From assembly GCA_037447605.1 (NCBI GenBank), contig CM074806.1, positions 4,216,001 through 4,280,000 on the forward strand: a stretch of DNA of 64,000 nt, written 5' to 3'. Positions 1,342 through 61,297 of the stretch are shown in pieces. The translations under genes and the position numbers were made by a program. The DNA comes from Zygnema circumcarinatum SAG 698-1b (taxonomy: Eukaryota > Plantae > Zygnematophyceae). The notes beneath the pieces were generated by a model that ran no database searches, was not told where the DNA came from, and saw nothing but the letters and a program-made list of their open reading frames with translations. Numbering within the stretch: the stretch's first letter is position 1; each line of letters opens with the position of its first letter.

Positions 1342-3043
1342 AGGAGCACGGGCGCTCGTTCTCTTCCAATGTCTCACTGTCCTTCTGTCTGCCGCTCTCG
1401 TCGTGCACTGCGTATTGTATGGGAGGGGTATCACAGGACGTGAGTCACTGCTGCAAGATGTACTCTGTGTATAAAGCCTGCTTGAATACCACACTGTTAA
1501 AGTGGCGTTTCTGTCAAGCTTGTTGCTGCTATCGTGGCGTGTGGAAAGGTCATGCATGGTCCGTATGTCCTTCCATGGACCATGGTTCAACATGCCTCCG
1601 CATTTCGGACAAATGTGACCGGGGCTTGCACGGGCCAAAATAACCAACATTTTTGCTACTGACAAATAGTATTACAAAACCTTAACCAACTTCTACTGTG
1701 ATTTGAGGAGTTGGTACTTTGTAAGTGGTTAGTCCATGGCTAATAGACTCCTCTTTAGTCAGAAGTAATTACGATGTCGAGTTTCTGCCAACACTACCGG
1801 CTCATACAAATCACCATAACCACATTGTTTAGTCTTTTGTTCGGGCCCAAGCTCCCAGGTAAGGCCCAGCACTTTCTCCCTATGTACCTTAGATGGCCTT
1901 GGCCCTGCCATTTCGATTTGGCATGACCCATGAGCATGAGGATGCATCATGCATGCCCATGATGGTGAGGGAGATGGAGAGAAAGGAGACGTAAGAGAAT
2001 CCTGCGGTGCTCAAACTCTTCCTTCCCATATGGCAAAATGTGAACCCAATGTGAACCAGTCATAAAAACCCAAAGAATTAATGGTTTTGAGCGAAAGCCA
2101 TTCGTTCAGAAAGGCAGAAGCAGAGCCCCCCAGAGGAGCAGAGAGAGGAACGAACTCTGTCACCTCCGTCACCTCCGTTTTGTACGGCACCGAAACTGTA
2201 CGTCACAATACCGTACTGTACCATGCGGCGAGCCACCATGTCGTACGGACATGCTATTCTGTACGGATGTATGATCTTCGGGAAGCTCCTGCTGGAACCA
2301 TGGCTTCCTCGCGCCATGGCTGCAAGGGGGCGGGCGGGAACTCTCCAGATTCCAGAGACGGCTGCGGATATCTTTTGAGGAGGAGGTCAGCTGCTGCTTG
2401 TGGCTGTGATGCGCTCAGAGGAAAGCGCAAATAGCGCTATATTTTTTGTAGCATAGCTCTTAGAATTACCGCTGGCTATCTTAGTTGCGGGGTGTCTGTG
2501 AAGGCTGGAGCCTCGTCCTAAACTGCGGGATTGGCTGCCTTGGTCTCTGCCTCTGCGTGTGGTTTAGGTTAGCTCTGCTCACACAAGGCATCCCAATTTG
2601 TTTTTGTACCGGATCGTAAACTAAGCAAGCTTTGGAAAATCAACGAGCAACGAATTCTGTTCTGCTCTGCTCCTCCCACTCGTTTTTGCACCTTTCTGAT
2701 CCAATCTTCAAACGAGCCGTACTACAGCTGTTCGAGCATAATCAACAATTCGATGAGGCGGACAGCTGGCATAAGCTGCTTTCTTTCTGCTTCACCATGT
2801 CTCTTAATTCTTTCTCTCCAGTGCCCTAAAATTCTCATTTTTTTGGGTCTACATTGTGCAGGTAAAGGCATGTAACCTTCTATTGGACTCCAAGGTCTCC
2901 GAAGGGCGCGCTTAGCAGTTGTCTTTTCCTTTGATTCATTCTTTGCGCCCTCTGTCCCCCTTACCTCTTTCTTTTCACTTTGACTCCGAGCGCCGTACTT
3001 TCACATCAACATCCTTTTTTCCAATTAAAGTTGAAATTTCCCC

Positions 3044-6000
3044 ATGGCGAAACCTAGTAATAACGCTTCTCATTCTCATGCGGAGATGCTGAAAGTGCAA
3101 GGAAATCATCTGTTCCTGAAAGAGAAGCTGGGAGCAGCCATTGACGCCTATACAGAGGTATGTTTTCAGCAACCCCTCTCTGACTCTCTCCCTCACAGTT
3201 TTTGTCTTTGGTTATATCCACATGCTGCTCTTATTCACTCTTGTTTTGACATTTGCCCTTCGTTTCTTCTTCCTCCATTAGAGTTGCTATACCCCGTGCA
3301 GCAACGGTCCCATTTAACCCTTTCATTGTCTGCTGTTTTTGAAAACGCATTAAAAATCTCTGCGATGTGTGATGTGTTTGTTTTGCTGAATTGCATGTTT
3401 TTCGGCGTGCTGTCACGATGCAGGCAATTGCACTGTGCCCCAATGTTGCCGTTTATTGGACGAATCGCGCTCTCTGTTACAAGAAGAGGAAGTGAGCTCT
3501 CTAAGTGCCTGCTCTCAGAATTCGCCATCTTGAGGCCCTTTTTCTCAGTTCGTGTATGTCTGGTTCATGGCCTTGCTTCCTGATGCTTCATGGAATTGAA
3601 GGATGGAGGAAAAAGGAAGGACAAGAGACGGTGAAGGAGTGTTAAAGACGGAGAGGCCGGAGAAGGGTGAAGTAGGGAGTAGGAAAAAGGGAGTGGGGAG
3701 GAGAGGAAGCGAGAGAGAGGAGGGTGGTCGAGGAGATTCTGGGACCCTGTTCGTCTTGCGCTAGTCAAAGTAAGTGATTATGGCTCTCAAGAATGAAAGT
3801 AAGGGCGAGCCATTGACGGAAATTGGGGTCTGCATTGGGATACAGCGAATGGACGCGAGTGGAGGGCGATTGCAAGAAGGCTTTGGAGCTCGATCGTGAA
3901 TCTGTTAAGGTGACGGTTGAAATAGTTCAATTTGTATGTGGGGTTAGAAGGACTCCTTAGAGACTGTTTATTCTTTATTCGATTGTTTTGTACAGAATGT
4001 ATTGCACTTACTCTGATTCCCTGACTTTTGCATCTGCAGGGACACTACATGTTGGGCTTGGCGCAGCTGCACCAAAAGTACTATGCAGATGCGATACGGG
4101 CACTGGAAAAGGTAGGACTAATCCTCTACATACGCTTCAAGTCTTGGGTTGTAGTCTTCTATCAGCCTCCTATCAAGGATTTATTTTCTTTCTCTAACCG
4201 GCCTTGCGCTTATTCGGACGCGCACATAAACCTGGGCTTCACACATCTTCATAGATATGAAGGTTTCTGGGAAATGCACAAACTCTAGCATGCCACGTTT
4301 ATTATGATGATTCCGAATGAAGGACATATTTTTTTGGGTTGATTTTCCTTCATACGTTATGCTTCAGGCTCTTGATTTGGCTCGTACCCAGAAGGGTGGT
4401 CCTGATATGGTGGAGGAAATCTGGCAAGAACTTGCAAAGGCTAGATACAATCAGTGGCAGGTGGAATCTGCAACAAGGAGAGACCGGCATAATCGCTTAA
4501 GGTTAGACATTGGAGCCGATTCTGCTTACACAGCAAAAGGACATATGCCTTCACACAATTGAAAAACCATAGTACAGAAGCTTCATGTTAGGCCAGTTGT
4601 GTCGCATTATGAAGATAGAATGGCACCGAAAATGTCTAACGAAGTGAACTGAACTTTTTAGGTAAGGTTATGCCTTAAACATGTGTGAGCCATGGGGCTG
4701 ATTTTCATGCTTGCTGTCGATTTTCAGGGAACATTTACAAGCCTTGATGAAAGCTAATTATGAGGAGCAGAGAGAGAGGATTAAGAAGGGGAGCGAGCCG
4801 GAGAGCACTACTACAACTTCCGAAAAGGAAGGAGGTGAACTGACTTCGGAAACGGAGTCAACTTCACAGTCTGCAGAACCACGTGGTGGGCGGAGCAATC
4901 CCGAGCTCAATCAGGATGATGCGGAGGGAGTGGATAGGCCGCATAACATGGACATAGATGAGGGGTTGCCTGTGGAGAATGTCAAGGTGGGGGATCGGCA
5001 GGAAGGCGGAGCATCGGTTTCTTATGGTGGGTATCAATACACTACAGGGTAGTACTCTAGTATATGGGAACATAGAAGATCACAGTAAAGGGTACACTCT
5101 GTATGTAATACAATACTATACTATATTAGACTATACAATATACTATTCATACTATACACTACTAACAGCAATGCATTTAGCAATGCATTTAGCAATGTAT
5201 TTTATACGGCATTTTCCTGTGATATACTGCATAGTATCCATGGAGTACACTGCCTTATATAGGAATTCCGCTGTGAAACATGCTGCCCTTTATGCGATAA
5301 GGCGAAGTTGTTGACAGCGTGATAAATTCGCAGATTTGCTACAATGTATGTATTTGCGAAATTGCCATCCCTCAAGCAATCGTTAATGCTGAAATCTGCT
5401 GCAGAGGAGAAAGAAAGGGAGAGTTGGCGAAGTGCTGAACTTGCGCGGTTGGCGGAGGAGTATGAAGAACGTGTGAACACTCTCGAGAATGTGTTTGACA
5501 AAGCGGGAGAGCGGGACCGAGTGGGAGAGGTGAGAGCTGTAAAAGCAAAAAAAAAAAAAAAATGAGTAGAATTTTTTAAACGATGTTATTAATTTTAACT
5601 GTGCAGGAGAGCATTTTTAGCTGCTTTTCCATTTTAAAATGTTCAAAAATCTTAGCCTTTCCCTGGTATGATTTTTTCTTTTGGAACGGCTTTTTTGAGT
5701 TTATTATGCTGAGGTAGATCAAGCGCAACGTTATCGACAAAAATGGGTCAAGCTTTTTGAATGTGATGCTGCCTGTATCTGTGTGGGAGATATCCTTTGC
5801 ATATGTTTTGTTTTTGTGATTTAATTTATCCCTTTTCGGGCTGTTCTTTGGGCGTCTCAGATTCCCGACCATCTGTGCTGCAACATTACTATGGATATTT
5901 TTCGGGACCCTGTTGTCACTCCCTGTGGAATATCTTACGAGCGATCTCAACTAATGCAGCACTTGAAGAGGGTGAGCATTTTGAAGCCTGCCATTTCTCC

Positions 6001-51449: not shown

Positions 51450-52343
51450 GGCTGCCAGGACGTTCCTCGGGCAACCTTAAATCTTTCTTGCTTCTGGAGG
51501 CCTCCCTCTCCCTCTCTCCCTCCCTCTCTCCCTCCCTCCCTTTCTCCCGTCCCCTCCCTCGCCCTTTACCTCGCCTTACTCCTCTTTCCCTCCCTCTCTC
51601 CCGCCCTCTCCCTCCCTCTCACTCCTCTCCCTCTCCCTCTCCCTCTTCCTCTCCCTCTCTCCCTCTCCCTCTCTCCCCTCTCCCCTCTCCCCTCTCCCCT
51701 CTCCCTCTCCCCCTCTCCCTCTTGCTCCCGTGCGCCTGTCCGTCTCCCGCGACTCTTCAAAGGCCATACAAAATTTGGAAACAAAATTTACAAATTCGGG
51801 CCTCTCTAGTTTTTGTTTCCATTTTTAGGGCCGGGGACGGCGGCCGGCGAGTGCTCCGGAGGAGGACACGTGGCGCCACCTGCGCTGTCGTGGGGCGAGT
51901 AGCGTGTCCAGCTGTGATTGGCGTTCGACCGTACACACGCGCGGGACCGTGCAAACGGGATTGACCAATAAAATGTCACCACGTGGCATACCAGCTTTTG
52001 ATTCGAAGACAGCATTGTTTTTTTCGTCCCGGTCTGAAGGGCTAGCTGGCAGGTAAACGTTTCTTCAGCCAATGAGGGCTTGCTCTGATTGGGCGACAGC
52101 GAAGCTTACATCTGCCCGGAAAAGATTCTTATCGGGCTTGACGTGACGTGGCACTATTTGTGCCCACGTGGATATGGTATTACTTGCATGGAGTCGGGCC
52201 AATAAAATAGCGCCACATGGCCAATGTTCATGCCACGTGTACAGGGAAGGGCCCGATTGGCAGGTGGAGCGGTTCGCGGAGCGGGAGGGGTTTGGGAGGG
52301 TTTAGGGCCGCCTGTGGTAGGGAGGGAGGGAGGAGGGGAGCTC

Positions 52344-52898
52344 ATGGGGGGAACAGGGAAGGAGGAGGGCAAGGGGAAGGATAAGGAGAAGGAGATGGAG
52401 AAGGTGAAGGAGAAAGAGCGGGAGAAGGAGGAGAAGAAGGAGAGGGAGAGGGAGAGGGAGAAGGAGAAAGAGGAGGAGAAGAAGAAAGGGAAGGAGAAGG
52501 TGAAAGAGGAGGGAGGGAAGGAAAAAGAGAAGGAGAAGAAGGAGACTATGGAGAAGGAGAAAGAGGAGGAGAAGAAGAAAGGGAAGGAGAAGGTGAAAGA
52601 GGAGGGAGGGAAGGAAAAAGAGAAGGAGAAGAAGGAGAAGGTTAAGGAGAAGGATAAAGAGAAAGAGGAGGAGAAGAAGAAAGGGAAGGAGAAGGTGAAA
52701 GAGGAGGGAGGGAAGGAAAAAGAGAAGGAGAAGAAGGAGAAGGTTAAGGAGAAGGATAAAGAGAAAGAGGAGGAGAGGGACGGGGGAGGGAAGGAGAAGG
52801 ACAAGGACAAGGACAAGGACAAGGACAAGAAGGAGAAGGAGAAAAAGGAAGGAGGCGGGAAGGAGAAGAAGGACAAGGAGAAGGAGAAGACGAAATAG
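52344..52898 (+). other. Lys/Glu-rich ORF (184 aa) built from ~96-108-bp internal repeats; either a coding gene or a purine-rich repeat
   Basis: ATG 52344 to TAG 52898 with strong codon-like periodicity (GAG/AAG/AAA/GAC) and three copies of EKEKEEEKKKGKEKVKEEGGKEKEKEKKE. Purine-rich DNA is stop-poor by default. Confidence 0.35.
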
Positions 52899-54148
52899 AC
52901 GGCGAGAAGCGTGAGGAGTTGGAGAGAATCGTCCCGCGGCGGAGTGAAGTGAGAGCAGGTTCCCACCTTGTACATAGTAAATTTTGATTTGTGACGTGAC
53001 AATTGGTCCTTGCATTGACGTGTTGAGTGTGGGGGGTCTTTAGGAATGCGTTCATTTATTTTGTTTGCGTCGGATCGTCAATGGGTGTCGGCTCAGCCGT
53101 GAACTGTAACGGTAAACAGAACTGTACATTTGCTTATTTCAACGTTGTTTGTTTGAATTTTCGACCCACTTGTCCTCGCATTTTGGAGACAAGCTATGAT
53201 TTCATTTGTGGAGTCCTTGAACGGGGCGCGTCAGTCTTGCTCAAATAGGAACAGGGGGGGGGTGTGGCATTGATCTCACGATGTCATGGTCAAAAAGGAA
53301 GTGGAAGAATGCTGTAATCAAGTGTCACACTTTGGTGAACCTGGACGGGATCTGGGGAATATTCATTGTCTCGTCACACGGAAACTCGCTGTTCCACGTG
53401 GACGGTTTTGTAAGACTGACACCCCCCCACAAGAGACTCATTTCTATTGGAAATCCCCCAACTTTGGCTGCCAGACCAGCCACCCAGTCGTTGCATTTAC
53501 TCAGTCTTTTAATTTATCCACAGCACATTCATCCACATGGAACTCCAAAATTCCTGAATTACTTCGTAGCAAATTAGCACATAACCAGCCTTACACGCAG
53601 TGCACTGTTCATAACTCCGTCTCCCACAACGGCTGCATTTTTAAACTTCAACTCTCCCATCGAGGCGAGAAGGAATAAGTGCGAGGCAACTGCCAACCCA
53701 CCGCTTGCCAACCCTAATACTCACAGTTAGGCTTTCACCTCAGCAATGACGATCATACTCCTCCTCCCGCTTTCCTGCCCTATCTCCTGCCCTCTCTCCT
53801 CCCGTCTCCTGCCCCTCTCCTCCCCACTTTCCTCGCCTCTCTCCTGCCCACTCTCCTCCCCTCCCGTCGCCCCCGTCGGTTGCCCGCTTCACATGATTGG
53901 TGCTGAACAAAACCCGCCGCATGCGAACCTCACCGTGTCTCTTAAACGGCTTCTCTTGGCACCCAAAAGGAAAGGTAAGCTTCCTTTTCTCCCTCCCTCC
54001 CTCCCTCCCTTCCCCCCTTCCTCCCTTTCCCCCTCCCTCCCTCCCTCCCTCCCTTTCCCCCTCCCTCCCTCCCTCCCTCCCTNNNNNNNNNNCCTCCCTC
54101 CCTCCCTCCCTCCCTCCCCCCTTCACAGCAGATGAGGCCTGCCTCTTA

Positions 54149-57100
54149 TTAGTCGGAGTTGTGACCATCCTTTCGACTATTTTGCCGAATCTCATCGAAC
54201 TGCGCAACTACCTCCGGCGCCGGCTGTGCCCTCATCCCCAGTCTTACTCGGATGGCTTCGGGCGAAGGGAGGCGGAGGTTGGCGAGTCGCCGGAAGGTGG
54301 GGGTCTCCTGAATGGAGGGCCCCTCCTTGGCCGCCGCAATGATGGCGTCAGGGGTCGCCATGAGCCCCTCCACCGTTGAGGAAGCGAAGTCGAATGTTCC
54401 GGCCATAGGCTGCAGGAAGGGCAAGTAGAAAAAATGTACATGCATATGTATATGTTACAAAGATGAGAACATTCGTTGTAGGCATGAAGATAGGAAAGAA
54501 TAGCAGTGTGTGGAGCAGAGGAGGGAGGAGATAGGGTTGAGATGAATCCTTACTTTGCAGACGGCGCTGAGGGCCACACAATCCGCAAGGGAAGCGAAAA
54601 AACAGAGCGTCCCAGAACCGGCCCCCAAGTACAAAAACGAAACGAGACCTGTGAGAGAGTCTCAACATTTTCCAGAAAAAAGTCTTTTTCTATTCAAGAG
54701 CTCGCATGTAATCTAGGCACCTCCTCAGAAATCCTAAAGAAGACCTTATCGTACTGTTTCCAAAACCCTAAAATGGACCTATAGTGCTGCTTTCGAAACC
54801 CTAAAAAGGAATGAAATGCGGATTGGACGGCTGAAGACTCACCCTGTGAGTCCCTTGGCAACTCCGCGCACAACTGCAAAGCCATGAACGGACGGACTTT
54901 CTCGAGAAGTCACGGCAGATGCTCTCATCGGCTCTGTCTGAACCCCCTCACCTCACCCAGCACACATCACAGAGGAATTGCCAGACATGCATTATGCATT
55001 ACATGTTTCCGTGTTCACATCGCATCTTCTCCATCCCATGTTTCTACAACAAGAACCAATACACATGTATATTTCAGATTCTCTGAATCTTGGCTTCCGA
55101 TTTGTTTTGATTTGTTTTGTTTGATTTTTTTGTTTTTGATTTGTTTTTTTTTTGCTTCTTGATCGTCCTCTACTTCGAAAGCTATTGAGAAAGCACATTG
55201 CACCTTGGAATCTCAAGCTGTGAAGGAGTAAAAAAGGGGCTCACCACCAACCCCGTCACACCGTCATAGACTCCGTTGCTCAGTCGCTTGAAGCCGATCA
55301 TAATGCCCTCCCCAATGTGGTTCGGTTTAGACCGCAACTCATCATCTGGGGTCAAATATTTTGGTCTATGAACTGGTAATTCTTGAGCAACGTTTACACC
55401 GAAAATTGTATCTGGGGTGAACCGAAAGCCGTCTCCGAGCTGTTTTGAAAAAACCGCGACACCTTCAACTGGGTACTGAATTGCTCTGAGAATTGCCAGA
55501 ACGAGCATTGAAGAAAAAATGTCAAATAGCATAAAGTACAAAACGGCGCTGTAAATTACCTGTCTGATTTCCTCCACTGAACTTGAAAGGGGTCCTGGAA
55601 GGATCAGTACATCATATTGGAAAGTGCAGGGATTTAAAATGAGAGATTTTTCAACATACCCAGCAAGACCGGTCCCAATGCCTTTGACAAGGCCTTGAAC
55701 CCCGTCCTTAGAAACTCCTTCAATTGGGTCACTCTGTCACAGGAAGCTTCTCAAACTCAGTTTACATAACAACGAAATGAAAGACTTCAAACTACATGAT
55801 TACTGAACTTGGACTGAGTCCATGGGAGGTAGAGGAGATTATGATCCTTCCTAAATTTTGCCTCCAAATCCTCAACATCGAGTTTTACTGTTGGTGCGGC
55901 TATTAACAGAACTCTAGGAACTGCGAAAGCCTCTCCATGCAGGCTTAAACATTCTGACAACCTTCAAACAAAAAGTTGGTGCAAAGCTTGCATAGGATTG
56001 CCCTCCTCTCCACCTTTCTACTTTTCCTAACTAAACGGTAGTAAGAAAAGCTCACCACAAGATGGTTGAGTCCATGCATGAACTTTGAAGCAAAGCCGCT
56101 GATGCCCCCCACCACTCCCTCCCCAACATGGCGCGGAGTTCTTGGTCCTGCAAACACAAAAAAGTACAGTTAGATACATCGCAGTGAAGGAGCAGCCAAA
56201 AGCAGTTATCAGCGACATAAACAACTTGAAAGGCAGCTATTGCTTTTGGTATAGATGCTCGTCATCTGAGACCAATCCCGGACATTCATATCACCCCTAA
56301 TATTGTACAGAGCCCTACAGGAATTGGAGGGAGCACGACTTGTTCCAGTGTTCGAACCCTGCAAGGCTGACGACAGTTTAAGAACAAATATTCCTACGTA
56401 TGAATTGCTTGCTATACATTGCTGTATGGCACTGCTTGAAACAAGATGCTGTCTTGCAGTCGGCAACTACATAATGTATGGCACAGCAAAGCAGCATACT
56501 GGTTCAAACATGGCATTGAAATGATTTTATCTTCTCCAACTAATCAACGAGAAGAAAGCTCTCTGATTTCAATAAATTCCAACAAAGGATGGATGCATAC
56601 CTGTTAGTCTCTCAATTTCGTCGAGGAGTGAGAGACGGTGACCCAAGCTGGGTATGAGCTCTGCTAAACTTCCCCGGTCCATTTTTACAAGCACCGCTCC
56701 ATTGACGTGGTTCTCTACGAATACGTTTCTGTATTGCTCGAATCCTTTCTCAGCAAGCCAATCACCGACATCCTGCACACGTACACACAAAATGACTCAG
56801 AATTCAAACACAAGTTAAAACTTGGGACCCAGCTAGGTGTCCAAAGAATTAAAGGAGCGAAGGTGCCGCAATTCATGAAAGGGCATTTTGAAGTTGGCGA
56901 AGCCCGAGAGCTCATTACAAATGAGATATATGAAAGGATTGAAGCTGGACAATATAAGTGGCACTTCTGACGGCCTAATGAGAAAAGAAACGGAAAGGTC
57001 CCCAAAAAATATCGTGTTCTGCGTTTTTTGATCGACAGTTGGAGAATCAACCGACCTAGTTCCAAGATACCATTCTTTACTTTCTACTGCGGCTGCAGAC

Positions 57101-57628
57101 GACCAATACAGCCATAAGTACTACGGCACTGACTGCGACAAAATGGGCTTCTACATCACTTTACAATCTCTTGTCCCAAGGTTCGTGAATACGAGATATT
57201 CAGGGATCGAAAAGGAAACGACAAAGCACGGAATCTGATAAACAATGAGGTGGGGAAAGGAGTACGCAGTGAGGCCAACAGACTGGCCAACATTGACCAA
57301 CTTGCAGTTTCCTTAACAGTACGACTATGAAACAAACCCAAATGGCTGAGACAACCACCTTCACAGCAAGGTGATGGTGGTGGTGGGGGTGGTTACACAT
57401 ACAGTCACAATTCGAGTCTCATATTTGAAAGGTTTTCCCAGAAACTGCCCTAATCTGCCAAATTAATTTGGTTAAACGACCCATAAATCTACATATGTTC
57501 CTCTACTTTATCTCCTTGCGGTTTCTTACCTCACATGTCCATGCTTTTGTGTCGTTCGGCCTCAGCCTGAACTCTCCATCGCCATCCGTTTCCAGAGCAG
57601 CTTCCGCTGTGCTTCCAGCGACGGCCAT
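54149..57628 (-). CDS. SAM-domain protein with two tandem VPS13/ATG2 C-terminal (ATG_C-like) repeats, 348 aa; exons 57628-57530, 56772-56601, 56147-56056, 55733-55660, 55485-55245, 54937-54843, 54566-54554, 54409-54149
   Basis: SAM: WTCEDVGDWLAEKGFEQYRNVFVENHVNGAVLVKM..LGHRLSLLDEI. Repeats: PRHVGEG..LVSDPIEG..GLVKGIGTGLAGAIQYPVEG and PNHIGEG..GVTGLVTEP..RGVAKGLTGAVCKPMAGTFDFASSTVEG. Exons sum to 1047 nt, in frame. The 3' end is less certain. Confidence 0.82.
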
Positions 57629-57829
57629 CCTAATCTCGCAAACTGAGCCTGCCTCTCGCTCTCTCTATCCCCCTCTCTCCCTCAATTTTATTGACAAGAA
57701 TGTCGTGTTTATGCTTGCCCTGCTTTGTGCCTGCAAGCAGGCAGGCGAGATGGCTTAAGGGCTCAGGAATATACGAAACAAAAGTAGAAATCTACCTTCG
57801 ATGATGGAGATAGAGTGTGTGTGTATGTG

Positions 57830-58278
<449 letters not shown>

Positions 58279-59900
58279 CAGAGGCTGACCGGTCTAACCG
58301 TAACGTGATTTCTTTTTATCAATGCCGCTATTTCTACTCATATTAAGCGTACCAGCAAGCATTCAACCATTGCATAGATTCATAACATGCATAACTCATC
58401 TTCTAAATGCCTTCTTACCCAAAAAAGCGCAGCTTCCGCTCCTTGTCTTCTGACCTAACCTGTCTTAAACAAAACAAGCTGCGAATATATGAATAATAGG
58501 TTTCAGAACCAAAAAAGATGGCCCTCATCCTCCTCCTGTTGCTTTCAGAAAGGAAAGGCTCCGGGAGCAGATGAGGGAGGCCAAGGGCATGCAAGAAACG
58601 TCTGTTACCTAGCACGCGTCTGCACCAAAAAAGGTACATAATTCGTACGAAATCTGAACAAAAGGTACATAAAACAATACGGTCATTGTCAAGTAACAAG
58701 AAAAGTGCTACAGAATTTGGTAGCGTACGGCGGCGCCGCAGTCAAACTGTACGGACGGGCGCTGGTTCGAAGATCGTTCGCACGCAATGATTGCGTGTGG
58801 GGACGCCCAAAAAATGCCCAAATCCGACGTGGCAGGTGCGCAAAGTTAATGGATTTTTCATTTGACGTCGTCGCTAGCTTCGTTTAGCGGTCAGTCTGAC
58901 GGAACGCTCGTTTCTATGCTGTGTTTTGATAGTTTTGGTATACCTACTGCAGAGGTCCGACCATTGGACCAACCATTGGATCAACCACTGGCATGGTTGC
59001 GAGCCATTGGTTTCAATGGTTTGGCAGCCATTGCCAATGGTTGCACCTCGCTCCTCGGAACCATTGATGGCGGACAAGCCGGTCACTGACAAATTGTTTG
59101 CAGTGAGGTAGAGTGAGGTATCAACCATTGCCAATGATGGAACCATTTGTTGGCGACCTATCCACTGCCAATCGCTGGAACTATCCCATGCAATGATTTT
59201 TTACAAGTGGTACGGTAATAGATTTCAACCCTTGGCGTTGGATCCAACCGTTGAGCCACTACCCATGGTTCGAACGGCTCGATTCAACATTGGCCAGCCA
59301 GTGATTGGCAACCAATGATTGGCAAAAAAGGTTTCCGGCCCAATGATCTGCCTTTGCAGTACAGTAACTCGAGCTCAGACCGTGGCAACCATTCGCCTAC
59401 AATCCTTTTGTCAGTGTTCGCTGGCCAATGGTTGCAGACCGTTGCCAACGGTTGGCCAGCTATGGTACTGTTTGCAGGCAGGGTTTGTATGGCAGGCAAG
59501 GGTTTTTTTTTTTTTTAAGAGCAAAAAAACCTGTTGTCTTCGGATACATCCACACCACACATTGACCAAACAAAAACTAAGGGGACATGGACCCGCAAAA
59601 AAACATCATAATAGGGTACAGTATGAAACGGGGCACGTCTCAATCCCATACTCTGGCCATCGTTAAACTAAAAATAATGTCCCATGACAAGGGCAAAATT
59701 TACAAAAAAATAACTTCTCACCGTCACAGGTCCACACTGCCGCTGAAAGTCGGCCATTATTCTAAATGCCTTCCGTAGTAACCAACCAACAGGCTTTGAG
59801 AAATTGACTAAACCCAGAAAAGGGCACAGCTTTGTAGCCCTCTCCACGCGCAAAACGAAGATTAAAAAACATATTTCACATATGGACCTACTCTCACTAT

Positions 59901-61297
59901 TTAAGACGTTTTAGCGTCCACTTTTTCTGCTTCTAAACATTCTTTCGCCCTTTGAACTTTCGATTGAATGTAAAACGACCCCTGCTTCTCGTTGCTCTCA
60001 TATAACCGATGATACCTCTGTTGATAATCAGGGAATAAAACAAAAGGCACACCCTAGAGAAATTAAAAAAGGTAGAAGAATACAAGCGAAGTGTAACACA
60101 GGAACAAATCTAAATGACTGCAACTACTCAGTAAGTATATATCTGCATGGAACAGTAAGTTGAGTACCCCCTGGATCGCTTGAAATAACAAGAAATGAAG
60201 CAAAACTTGGAGCAACTCACAACCTACAGGAATTGTTTCCCAGTAGCAGCATGAAATACCTATGAATACGCGCACTCTACAAAAATGCATAGACATGTAG
60301 AAACTCTCACTGTTTCAGGGCTTCCCAATTTCGAACCTTTTACAATGTTTTGCATTTTTTATGAACTTTTTTTATTCTCCATTACAGCTGTACCTGAAGC
60401 ACGTCTTCCCATGTAGTTTTGTCGGACACGCCGAGAATCATCCGCGCCTCCTGCACTGTCATCACTTTCGACGCTTTCCTCAAGTTGCCACCGACAGCCT
60501 CCTGGGCCACTCCAGTTTTGCCAGCATCTGCGCAATAAAGTGGGATAGACGTAAAAATCCTTTGAATTGTGGAATTTAAAAGTAACATATGATAAAATTT
60601 GCAAGAAGAGTAGCAAAAACGACTGAAGGAAGTTCACAGGTGAGGCAGGAAGAGGCGGCGGGGTGGTGGGGAGAAAGAGAAAGGGGGAGAGAGTGGGGAG
60701 AGAGAGAGAGAGAGGGAGAGAGAGGGGAGAGAGAGTGAGAGAGGGAGAGAGAGGGGAGAGAGAGAGGGAGGCTGAGAGGCAAGAGGAGGGCCCACAAGGA
60801 GAACGCAAGATAGGGATGATAGAACTCATAAAATGTTTTAAAAAAACTGAAACTAGAGGTCGTATGCCCTTCCAACGAACTTCGGGGTTTAAGAGTTTTT
60901 TTCTTTCGAGAAGTTTAGGACGCCGAAGGTCTTTGTGAGAGGAAGAGTTTTGAAGGTCTGAGGGTTTTCTGAGTTAGGCACTCACTGACGATGGCTTGTC
61001 GGTACGCCTGTGAAACTGCTCGAAACAAAATTCCGCCCCCCAAAACGATCAAATTGGCGATGATTTTTGAGGCCTGTAACATGCGGGAATCAGTCAAATC
61101 AGTCAACGACACATGTTGTAAGTAGCAAAAATAGTGGTCAAGGAGAGAGCGAAAAGTTAGGAGAGAGGGTGAGGGGAAGGGCGAGGACGATGCAGAAAGA
61201 GACCCTAACCCTGAACCCTAAACCCTAACCCTGAACCCTAAACCCTGCAATGAAAAGAGTAAAGAGGGGGAGGTGGAGGGGTGCAGCCGCTTACCAT
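59901..61297 (-). CDS. PAM16: Mitochondrial import motor subunit PAM16/TIM16, 113 aa; exons 61297-61295 (ATG only), 61073-60986, 60527-60394, 60017-59901
   Basis: MASKIIANLIVLGGGILFRAVSQAYRQA, MTVQEARMILGV, LYESNEKQGSFYIQSKVQRAKECLE; 342 nt in frame. Confidence 0.94.
61202..61247 (+). promoter_or_regulatory. Telo-box repeats (AAACCCTAA-like; a 20-bp unit twice) in PAM16 intron 1
   Basis: ACCCTAACCCTGAACCCTAAACCCTAACCCTGAACCCTAAACCCTG. Confidence 0.6.

Follow-up and report, generated by a model that had tools for sequence, protein, structure and literature searches.

A small SAM-domain protein of the alga Zygnema circumcarinatum with one ATG_C-type region homologous to the C-terminus of VPS13

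A stretch of 64,000 nucleotides from Zygnema circumcarinatum SAG 698-1b (contig CM074806.1, positions 4,216,001 to 4,280,000; hereafter the window, in whose numbering all coordinates are given) holds an eight-exon minus-strand gene whose product is probably a complete, soluble protein of 348 amino acids, made up of an N-terminal leader, a SAM domain, one ATG_C-type region and a tail of ~55 amino acids, and acting as a peripheral membrane or lipid-droplet coat, clustering factor or tether. The ATG_C-type region is predicted to form two homologous helical pairs from four long, amphipathic, Gly-rich helices. The corresponding ATG2_C helices of the bridge-like proteins are under active study, as they let VPS13 and ATG2 sense and dock on acceptor membranes (lipid droplets, damaged lysosomes and the phagophore). 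No cryo-electron microscopy map shows these helices in ordered form, they aggregate once cut from the giant proteins, and a natural, soluble, stand-alone version of ~350 amino acids offers a tractable handle on the region's own action. The gene also shows that the green lineage has put the ATG2_C region to use apart from bridge proteins, and the same architecture of a SAM domain and two repeats recurs in a second, environmental clade. For algal biology, analogy with the VPS13 region makes the protein a candidate lipid-droplet or membrane-stress protein.

Homology of the Gly-rich repeats to the VPS13 ATG2_C region

The Z. circumcarinatum model was searched exon by exon, with the transcript-derived orthologues P0020 (353 amino acids) and P0001 (368 amino acids) as stand-ins for the full-length protein; the further orthologues P0021 and P0019, the latter from Klebsormidium, have 414 and 355 amino acids. 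The close orthologue P0001 matched, with its residues 100-283, VPS13A (E 1.3e-6) and VPS13C 3430-3586 (E 4.9e-6), and both repeats of P0001 were collinear with these targets. The two-repeat relative P0009, searched with phmmer against all PDB chains, matched VPS13C 3429-3584 (E 1e-14) and VPS13A (E 1.9e-14), and the profile of A1, a 13-sequence family alignment, matched the PDB chains of VPS13A (E 3.1e-18) and VPS13C at 3428-3584 (E 2.6e-17). Since the C-terminal cap helix of VPS13C covers residues 3394-3418 (PMC13430412) and the match starts past it, the matched stretch corresponds to the ATG2_C amphipathic helices. In VPS13A the ATG2_C motif covers residues 2866-3029 (10.64898/2026.01.07.698282); positions 1313-1479 of the chain 9yg5_B (1625 residues) would correspond to about VPS13A 2862-3028 if this chain is the C-terminal part of the 3174-amino acid protein. 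The family is thus homologous in sequence to the VPS13 ATG2_C motif.

The ATG_C region has been described as two antiparallel helical pairs, i.e., two repeats of a helical pair of ~75 amino acids (Levine 2022, PMC7613979). Because the Zygnema repeats are collinear with the VPS13 repeats, and the VPS13 ATG_C region is itself two helical pairs, sequence comparison identifies them as the first and the second half of a single canonical ATG_C region and not as two tandem modules. A first-pass annotation, made by a model from the letters of this DNA, had reported "two tandem VPS13/ATG2 C-terminal modules"; that count has to be halved, as both repeats together run along the single ATG_C region of VPS13C (3428-3584). 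An independent internal duplication of a whole ATG_C region was considered and ruled out, as VPS13A and VPS13C themselves have two such repeats, with which those of the small protein are collinear.

The VPS13A and VPS13C ATG2_C regions resemble the Zygnema protein in the collinear homology over both repeats, in the four long amphipathic helices set as two helical pairs and in the shared Gly-rich pattern G-x-G-K-G-L-x-G-x-x-x-K-P-x-x-G. They differ in setting: in VPS13 the region is joined to a lipid-transfer groove of 3000-4000 amino acids and lies after the cap helix and before the PH domain, whereas in the Zygnema protein it is fused to a SAM domain within 348 amino acids, with no groove, VAB or PH domain; in addition, both Zygnema repeats open with P-x-H-[VI]-G-E-G. 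Some fungal sterol glucosyltransferases hold a homologous ATG_C region (Levine 2022, PMC7613979) and, likened by description, give a precedent for ATG_C helices outside bridge-like lipid transfer proteins; there, however, the region sits on a large fungal enzyme, while in Zygnema its partner is a SAM domain, within a small, non-enzymatic streptophyte-algal protein.

The gene runs from 57628 to 54149 on the minus strand and comprises 348 codons plus TAA (1047 nucleotides), as read from the raw sequence and checked by script. Its exons are as follows.

57530-57628, minus strand: exon 1, 33 codons from the ATG at 57628 to ...WTCE, with a phase-0 end; aligns collinearly with the N-terminal parts of P0001 and P0020
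56601-56772, minus strand: exon 2, SAM domain, 172 nucleotides, ending in phase 1; 72-75% identity to the orthologues
56056-56147, minus strand: exon 3, start of repeat 1 with helix 1, PRHVGEG ... HLV; 84-94% identity to P0020/P0001
55660-55733, minus strand: exon 4, carrying repeat 1 through its turn into helix 2, SDPIEG ... GTGLAG, ending in phase 2
55245-55485, minus strand: exon 5, end of repeat 1, variable linker and start of repeat 2, PNHIGEG ... GLV
54843-54937, minus strand: exon 6, carrying repeat 2 through its turn into helix 4, TEPMRA ... KGLTG, ending in phase 2
54554-54566, minus strand: exon 7, micro-exon of 13 nucleotides encoding (G)AVCK
54149-54409, minus strand: exon 8, end of repeat 2 (PMAGTFDFASSTVEGL), conserved tail of ~55 amino acids and TAA at 54151-54149

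The likeness between the two repeats was detectable exon by exon with BLASTP, which aligned exon 3 with the end of exon 5 (E 1e-4), exon 4 with exon 6 (E 0.031) and the start of exon 5 with exon 8 (E 0.048). When repeat profiles cut from A1 were compared with hhalign, repeat 1 aligned with repeat 2 over 81 columns at 99.6% probability (E 2.5e-24), so that the two mutually alignable Gly-rich repeats of ~80 amino acids described in the first-pass annotation were borne out at the level of the family. Exons 5 and 8 each aligned with the A1 profile at 99.7% probability (hhalign, E 7e-27 and 5e-26, respectively), and the invariant columns of A1 are almost all glycines, plus a few His, Thr and Pro residues. 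Searched alone against PDB sequences with phmmer, exon 5 had no match, and a match of exon 8 to TAL-effector repeats in the same kind of search was judged spurious; in the ESM Atlas both exons resembled unnamed clusters only, with low recognition. A word-index search with exon 5 gave no candidate either, which its length window had led one to expect.

The fold was predicted with AlphaFold2 for orthologue P0020 with A1 as the alignment. The model is all helical and places four helices at 108-141, 143-184, 209-242 and 247-296, with predicted local distance difference test (pLDDT) values of 70-82; together with the alignment of the two repeat profiles, it reproduces the helical-pair repeat organisation of ATG_C. 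A Foldseek search of this model against the PDB gave a match to the SAM part only, since the ATG2_C helices are not resolved in any VPS13 structure. Amphipathic segments of at least 18 residues were found: the best 18-residue hydrophobic moment per tested segment was 0.29-0.50 (0.43 for exon 4), with net charges of -3 to +1, and helices 1 and 3 stood clearly above shuffled controls, only 0.4-0.6% of the shuffles reaching their moment. The polar faces of the helices are rich in Gly, Ser, Thr and Ala, in which they resemble packing-defect sensors. Neither a Chorein_N domain nor a repeating beta-groove lipid channel was found. The absence of a chorein/RBG channel, as proposed from the first reading of the sequence, agrees with the length of 348 amino acids, with the all-helical model of P0020 and with the lack of any match to the Pfam domains Chorein_N, VPS13 and RBG in the exons or in 14 full-length relatives.

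Completeness of the gene and its micro-exon

All introns are of the GT-AG type with consistent phases, the frame is open throughout, and an in-frame stop lies 13 codons 5′ of the ATG. The tblastn alignments of P0020, P0001, P0021 and P0019 onto the window were collinear over every large exon; those of P0001 and P0020 reached from the region of the initiator Met as far as the C-terminus, their conserved exons showing 59-94% identity, and the C-terminus encoded by exon 8 agreed with both orthologues up to the last residues. P0001 is encoded by L001, a Logan contig of 2317 nucleotides (run SRR8128904), as an unbroken open reading frame of 368 amino acids preceded by a leader of 442 nucleotides with several in-frame stops, which is how the mature mRNA of a small protein is laid out. 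The Klebsormidium nitens orthologue, too, is a small, independent, intron-containing gene with unrelated neighbours. Given the collinear orthologues, the stops in the L001 leader, the unrelated neighbours in Klebsormidium and the PAM16-like exons upstream in the window, the gene is complete and is not the tail of a VPS13 gene. The first-pass model of 348 amino acids with a SAM domain and two Gly-rich repeats was re-derived exactly from the raw sequence, and its view of a clean N-terminal ATG, as opposed to a fragment of a longer VPS13, agrees with the upstream stop, the stops in the L001 leader and the conserved start and stop.

The same data bear on the idea that the gene is a fragment, a pseudogene or a mis-joined model: what is left of a VPS13 C-terminus, or else separate SAM and helix genes fused in the modelling. 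In its favour, the Z. circumcarinatum protein itself was not found in protein collections, and several public orthologue models are truncated or lack the SAM domain (P0002, P0003, P0005 and P0013). Against it stand the open frame and canonical splice sites, the stop 13 codons before the ATG, the PAM16-like exons on the same strand 2.7 kb upstream, the occurrence of the SAM domain and both repeats within one open reading frame in P0001, P0020 and P0021, and the start and stop that P0001 and P0020 share with the Zygnema gene. Moreover, the truncated models P0003, P0005 and P0013 break at the micro-exon junction of the window gene; since the breaks fall exactly at intron positions, they point to annotation errors and not to biology. 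This explanation is thus largely refuted, and we regard it as very improbable.

The micro-exon was placed by comparison with the orthologues. Eight AG...GT segments within the interval between exons 6 and 8 are open and phase-compatible, and only 54554-54566 matches the orthologue peptide, which reads A-[VLF]-C-K (AVCK, ALCK or AFCK) in all orthologues; the corresponding residues of Klebsormidium follow on from the preceding exon with no intron between. The public models of Mesotaenium endlicherianum (P0003, ME000017S02123), Closterium NIES-67 (P0013) and Closterium NIES-68 (P0005) end or derail at G[LF]AG, which is the junction preceding the micro-exon, and a 13-nucleotide exon therefore seems to defeat gene predictors. 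The conserved junction is thus of use for annotation, as it is the site at which several public gene models break.

The SAM domain and the proposed mode of action

Exon 2 matched the Pfam models SAM_1 (E 5.3e-10, 40 bits against a cut-off of 23) and SAM_2 (E 1.8e-8, 34.8 bits against a cut-off of 20.5), in accordance with the N-terminal SAM domain named in the first-pass annotation. Outside the SAM domain, neither the exons nor 14 full-length relatives had a Pfam match above the cut-off. In the AlphaFold2 model of P0020 this part has a pLDDT of ~90, and Foldseek aligned it with template modelling (TM) scores of 0.8-0.9 to the SAM crystal structures of Shank2, SAMD1, DGK-delta and PHC3; both the Pfam scores and the five-helix fold identify a SAM domain (PF00536/PF07647). 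The nearest matches by sequence and fold are DGK-delta, Shank2/3, SAMD1, PHC3 and SARM1, and as these are mostly self-associating SAM domains, the comparison is suggestive of self-association in the Zygnema protein. The self-associating SAM scaffolds (DGK-delta, Shank2/3, SAMD1 and PHC3/polyhomeotic) are the best SAM matches of the Zygnema protein; unlike it, none has ATG_C helices, and the likeness is that of overall sequence and fold.

Without a repeating beta-groove, the protein cannot carry lipids as a bridge. What the helical region may do instead is indicated by experiments on its homologs. Isolated VPS13C ATG2_C binds lipid droplets and moves to damaged lysosomes, and among giant unilamellar vesicles it binds only those with diacylglycerol-induced packing defects (PMC12081312, PMC13430412); the VPS13A ATG2_C motif supports liposome binding (10.64898/2026.01.07.698282), and the amphipathic helices of the ATG2A region termed CLR bind liposomes, this region also localising to droplets (10.1101/180315). 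By analogy, membrane or droplet binding is the most likely role of the Zygnema helices. In the mechanism that we propose, the four helices would fold along the surface of lipid monolayers or bilayers that have packing defects and insert there; lipid droplets and membranes that are curved or under stress offer such surfaces. Self-association through the SAM domain, which we infer from its nearest matches, would turn the weak binding of the helices into avid, clustered binding, and the outcome would be a peripheral coat, a clustering factor or a tether, so that the protein would serve as an oligomerising sensor of lipid droplets or packing defects. The roles put forward in the first-pass annotation, a possibly polymerising adaptor or tether or a competitor of VPS13/ATG2, are likewise putative.

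Several points weigh against this reading. Neither PF09333 ATG_C nor VPS13_C gave a match in the exons (E <= 10) or in 14 full-length relatives (E <= 1). The first-pass annotation had assigned the repeats to ATG_C/VPS13-C, had suggested a search with these hidden Markov models as a check and had named a mismatch of the repeats as a ground for rejecting the assignment; the check failed, and the assignment stands in the form of a direct homology to the ATG2_C regions of VPS13A and VPS13C but not of a Pfam match. The mismatch does not overturn the homology, since the latter rests on direct sequence comparison with VPS13. The match of the A1 profile to ATG2A 1755-1837 was weak (E 0.033), with no stretch passing alone. 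It falls on the CLR helices H2 and H3, which bind liposomes and droplets and lie outside the Pfam ATG_C model: in ATG2A that model covers 1830-1938, and the amphipathic CLR (1723-1829) is "not registered in Pfam" (10.1101/180315). Like the Zygnema region, the CLR is not covered by Pfam; unlike it, it belongs to a bridge protein that lacks a SAM domain, and the similarity between the two regions is marginal. The structure prediction was made on the orthologue P0020 as a stand-in for the Zygnema protein, the amphipathicity is moderate, with the helices other than 1 and 3 only modestly above shuffles, and transcript support is that of the orthologues. Polymerisation is not universal among SAM domains, and localisation, lipid binding and oligomerisation are drawn from analogy for every member of the family.

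Two rival accounts of the domains would lead to another function. The helical region could be mainly protein-binding, docking on partners of VPS13/ATG2 (scramblases or the bridge end) and thereby regulating or competing with the bridges. The invariant residues, mostly Gly with a few His, Thr and Pro, fit tight helix-helix packing equally well as membrane insertion, and the tail of ~55 amino acids is conserved among streptophyte orthologues. Furthermore, ATG2A mutants in the amphipathic face of the CLR keep tethering in vitro, a similar mutant set is cited with reduced autophagy, and the authors suggest another role for the region (10.1101/180315). However, every direct experiment on the homologous region gave lipid or droplet binding in isolation, and the helical region has no known protein partner. 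We consider a mainly protein-binding region rather unlikely, and a role as partner or competitor of VPS13/ATG2 possible.

The other account concerns the SAM domain, which might bind RNA or a heterologous SAM partner and recruit that partner to membranes with no formation of polymers. SAM domains are functionally diverse, and some of the structural matches of the Zygnema SAM domain are heterotypic pairs (CNK-HYP and Scm-Sfmbt). On the other hand, the nearest matches are mostly self-associating (DGK-delta, Shank2/3, PHC3 and SARM1), and no RNA-binding SAM domain of the Vts1/Smaug type was among the top matches, so this account appears distinctly unlikely. A coat, clustering factor or tether that binds membranes through its helices and gains avidity through its SAM domain remains our preferred reading.

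Relatives, intron pattern and genomic surroundings

A full HMMER search with exon 5 over 1.84 billion representatives gave only 11 proteins, and word searches added more. The best protein matches came from Klebsormidium, Chara, Mesotaenium and Closterium. The streptophyte-algal orthologues range from Klebsormidium to Zygnematophyceae and include Klebsormidium nitens GAQ81404.1, Chara braunii GBG85558.1, Mesotaenium endlicherianum, several Closterium strains and transcriptome contigs; GAQ81404.1 is annotated just as a SAM domain-containing or hypothetical protein. None of the searches gave a land-plant protein, but the word searches scored the best 8000 candidates only, so that absence from land plants is not proven. 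The Chara protein (P0002, GBG85558.1) has both repeats and an unrelated N-terminus of 45 amino acids in place of the SAM domain, and its first exons are probably mis-modelled.

The second clade, found on metagenomic, intron-poor contigs, comprises proteins of ~420 amino acids with a SAM domain and two repeats (P0025-P0027, P0041-P0044 and P0046), and may stem from a picoeukaryote or a giant virus. These proteins have a Gly/Met-rich N-terminus, and their genes lie beside a PARG-like gene; a member of the clade is encoded at L002:2568-3860, on the marine metagenome scaffold ENA ERZ23498367. Other relatives carry the helical pairs in other settings: P0009 and P0010 have two repeats and no SAM domain, P0008 (517 amino acids) and P0006 (689 amino acids) consist of four and five tandem helical-pair modules, respectively, with no other domain, and P0024 (309 amino acids) has a weak N-terminal B-box (zf-B_box, E 6e-4, below the cut-off). 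The helical-pair module behaves as a mobile, amplifiable unit. From its two, four and five free-standing tandem copies and from its fusions (SAM, B-box), spread over several lineages of eukaryotes, one may go further and picture the helical pair of ~80 amino acids as an autonomous, evolutionarily mobile membrane-sensing module that is more than an appendage of bridge proteins, with the streptophyte SAM-ATG_C protein polymerising through its SAM domain on droplets or damaged membranes as an unrecognised class of coat, or acting in trans at the acceptor membrane as a partner or gate of VPS13/ATG2; we hold this extension to be speculative and doubtful. The helical region, its lipid binding and its presence outside bridge proteins in fungal enzymes are already known. 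No paper was found in the literature on the SAM-ATG_C architecture or on the public gene identifiers, and the combination of SAM and ATG_C is to that extent a variant for which no published description was found.

The introns that the Zygnema gene has in common with Klebsormidium (L003) follow WTCE, the SAM domain (phase 1), ...HLV, ...GLV and ...CK. Both repeats hold introns at equivalent positions and phases, in two pairs. The phase-0 pair (56055/55734 and 55244/54938), after [HG]LV, is present in Z. circumcarinatum and Klebsormidium; the phase-2 pair (55659/55486 and 54842/54567), within the Gly codon after GL[AT]G, is present in Z. circumcarinatum only, both introns missing in Klebsormidium, and goes back either to parallel gain at the two homologous sites or to the loss of two introns.

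Upstream of the gene by ~2.7 kb and on the same strand lie PAM16-like exons at 60382-60588 and 60915-61112 (minus strand). The first-pass annotation had named PAM16 as the upstream neighbour; the exons are indeed PAM16-like and on the same strand, but Pfam support is weak, with Pam16 at E 0.064 on one exon-containing open reading frame (60915-61112), while the other has a typical J-like motif. An assembly gap of 10 N at 54081-54090 interrupts a GGGA/GGAGGG-rich low-complexity tract (flanks 54000-54140) ~60 nucleotides past the stop, so that the 3′ untranslated region is incomplete in the assembly and the coding sequence is intact. The gene is flanked by (GA)n/(CT)n microsatellites at 57792-58322 (~530 nucleotides, just upstream of the start) and downstream at 52154-53015.

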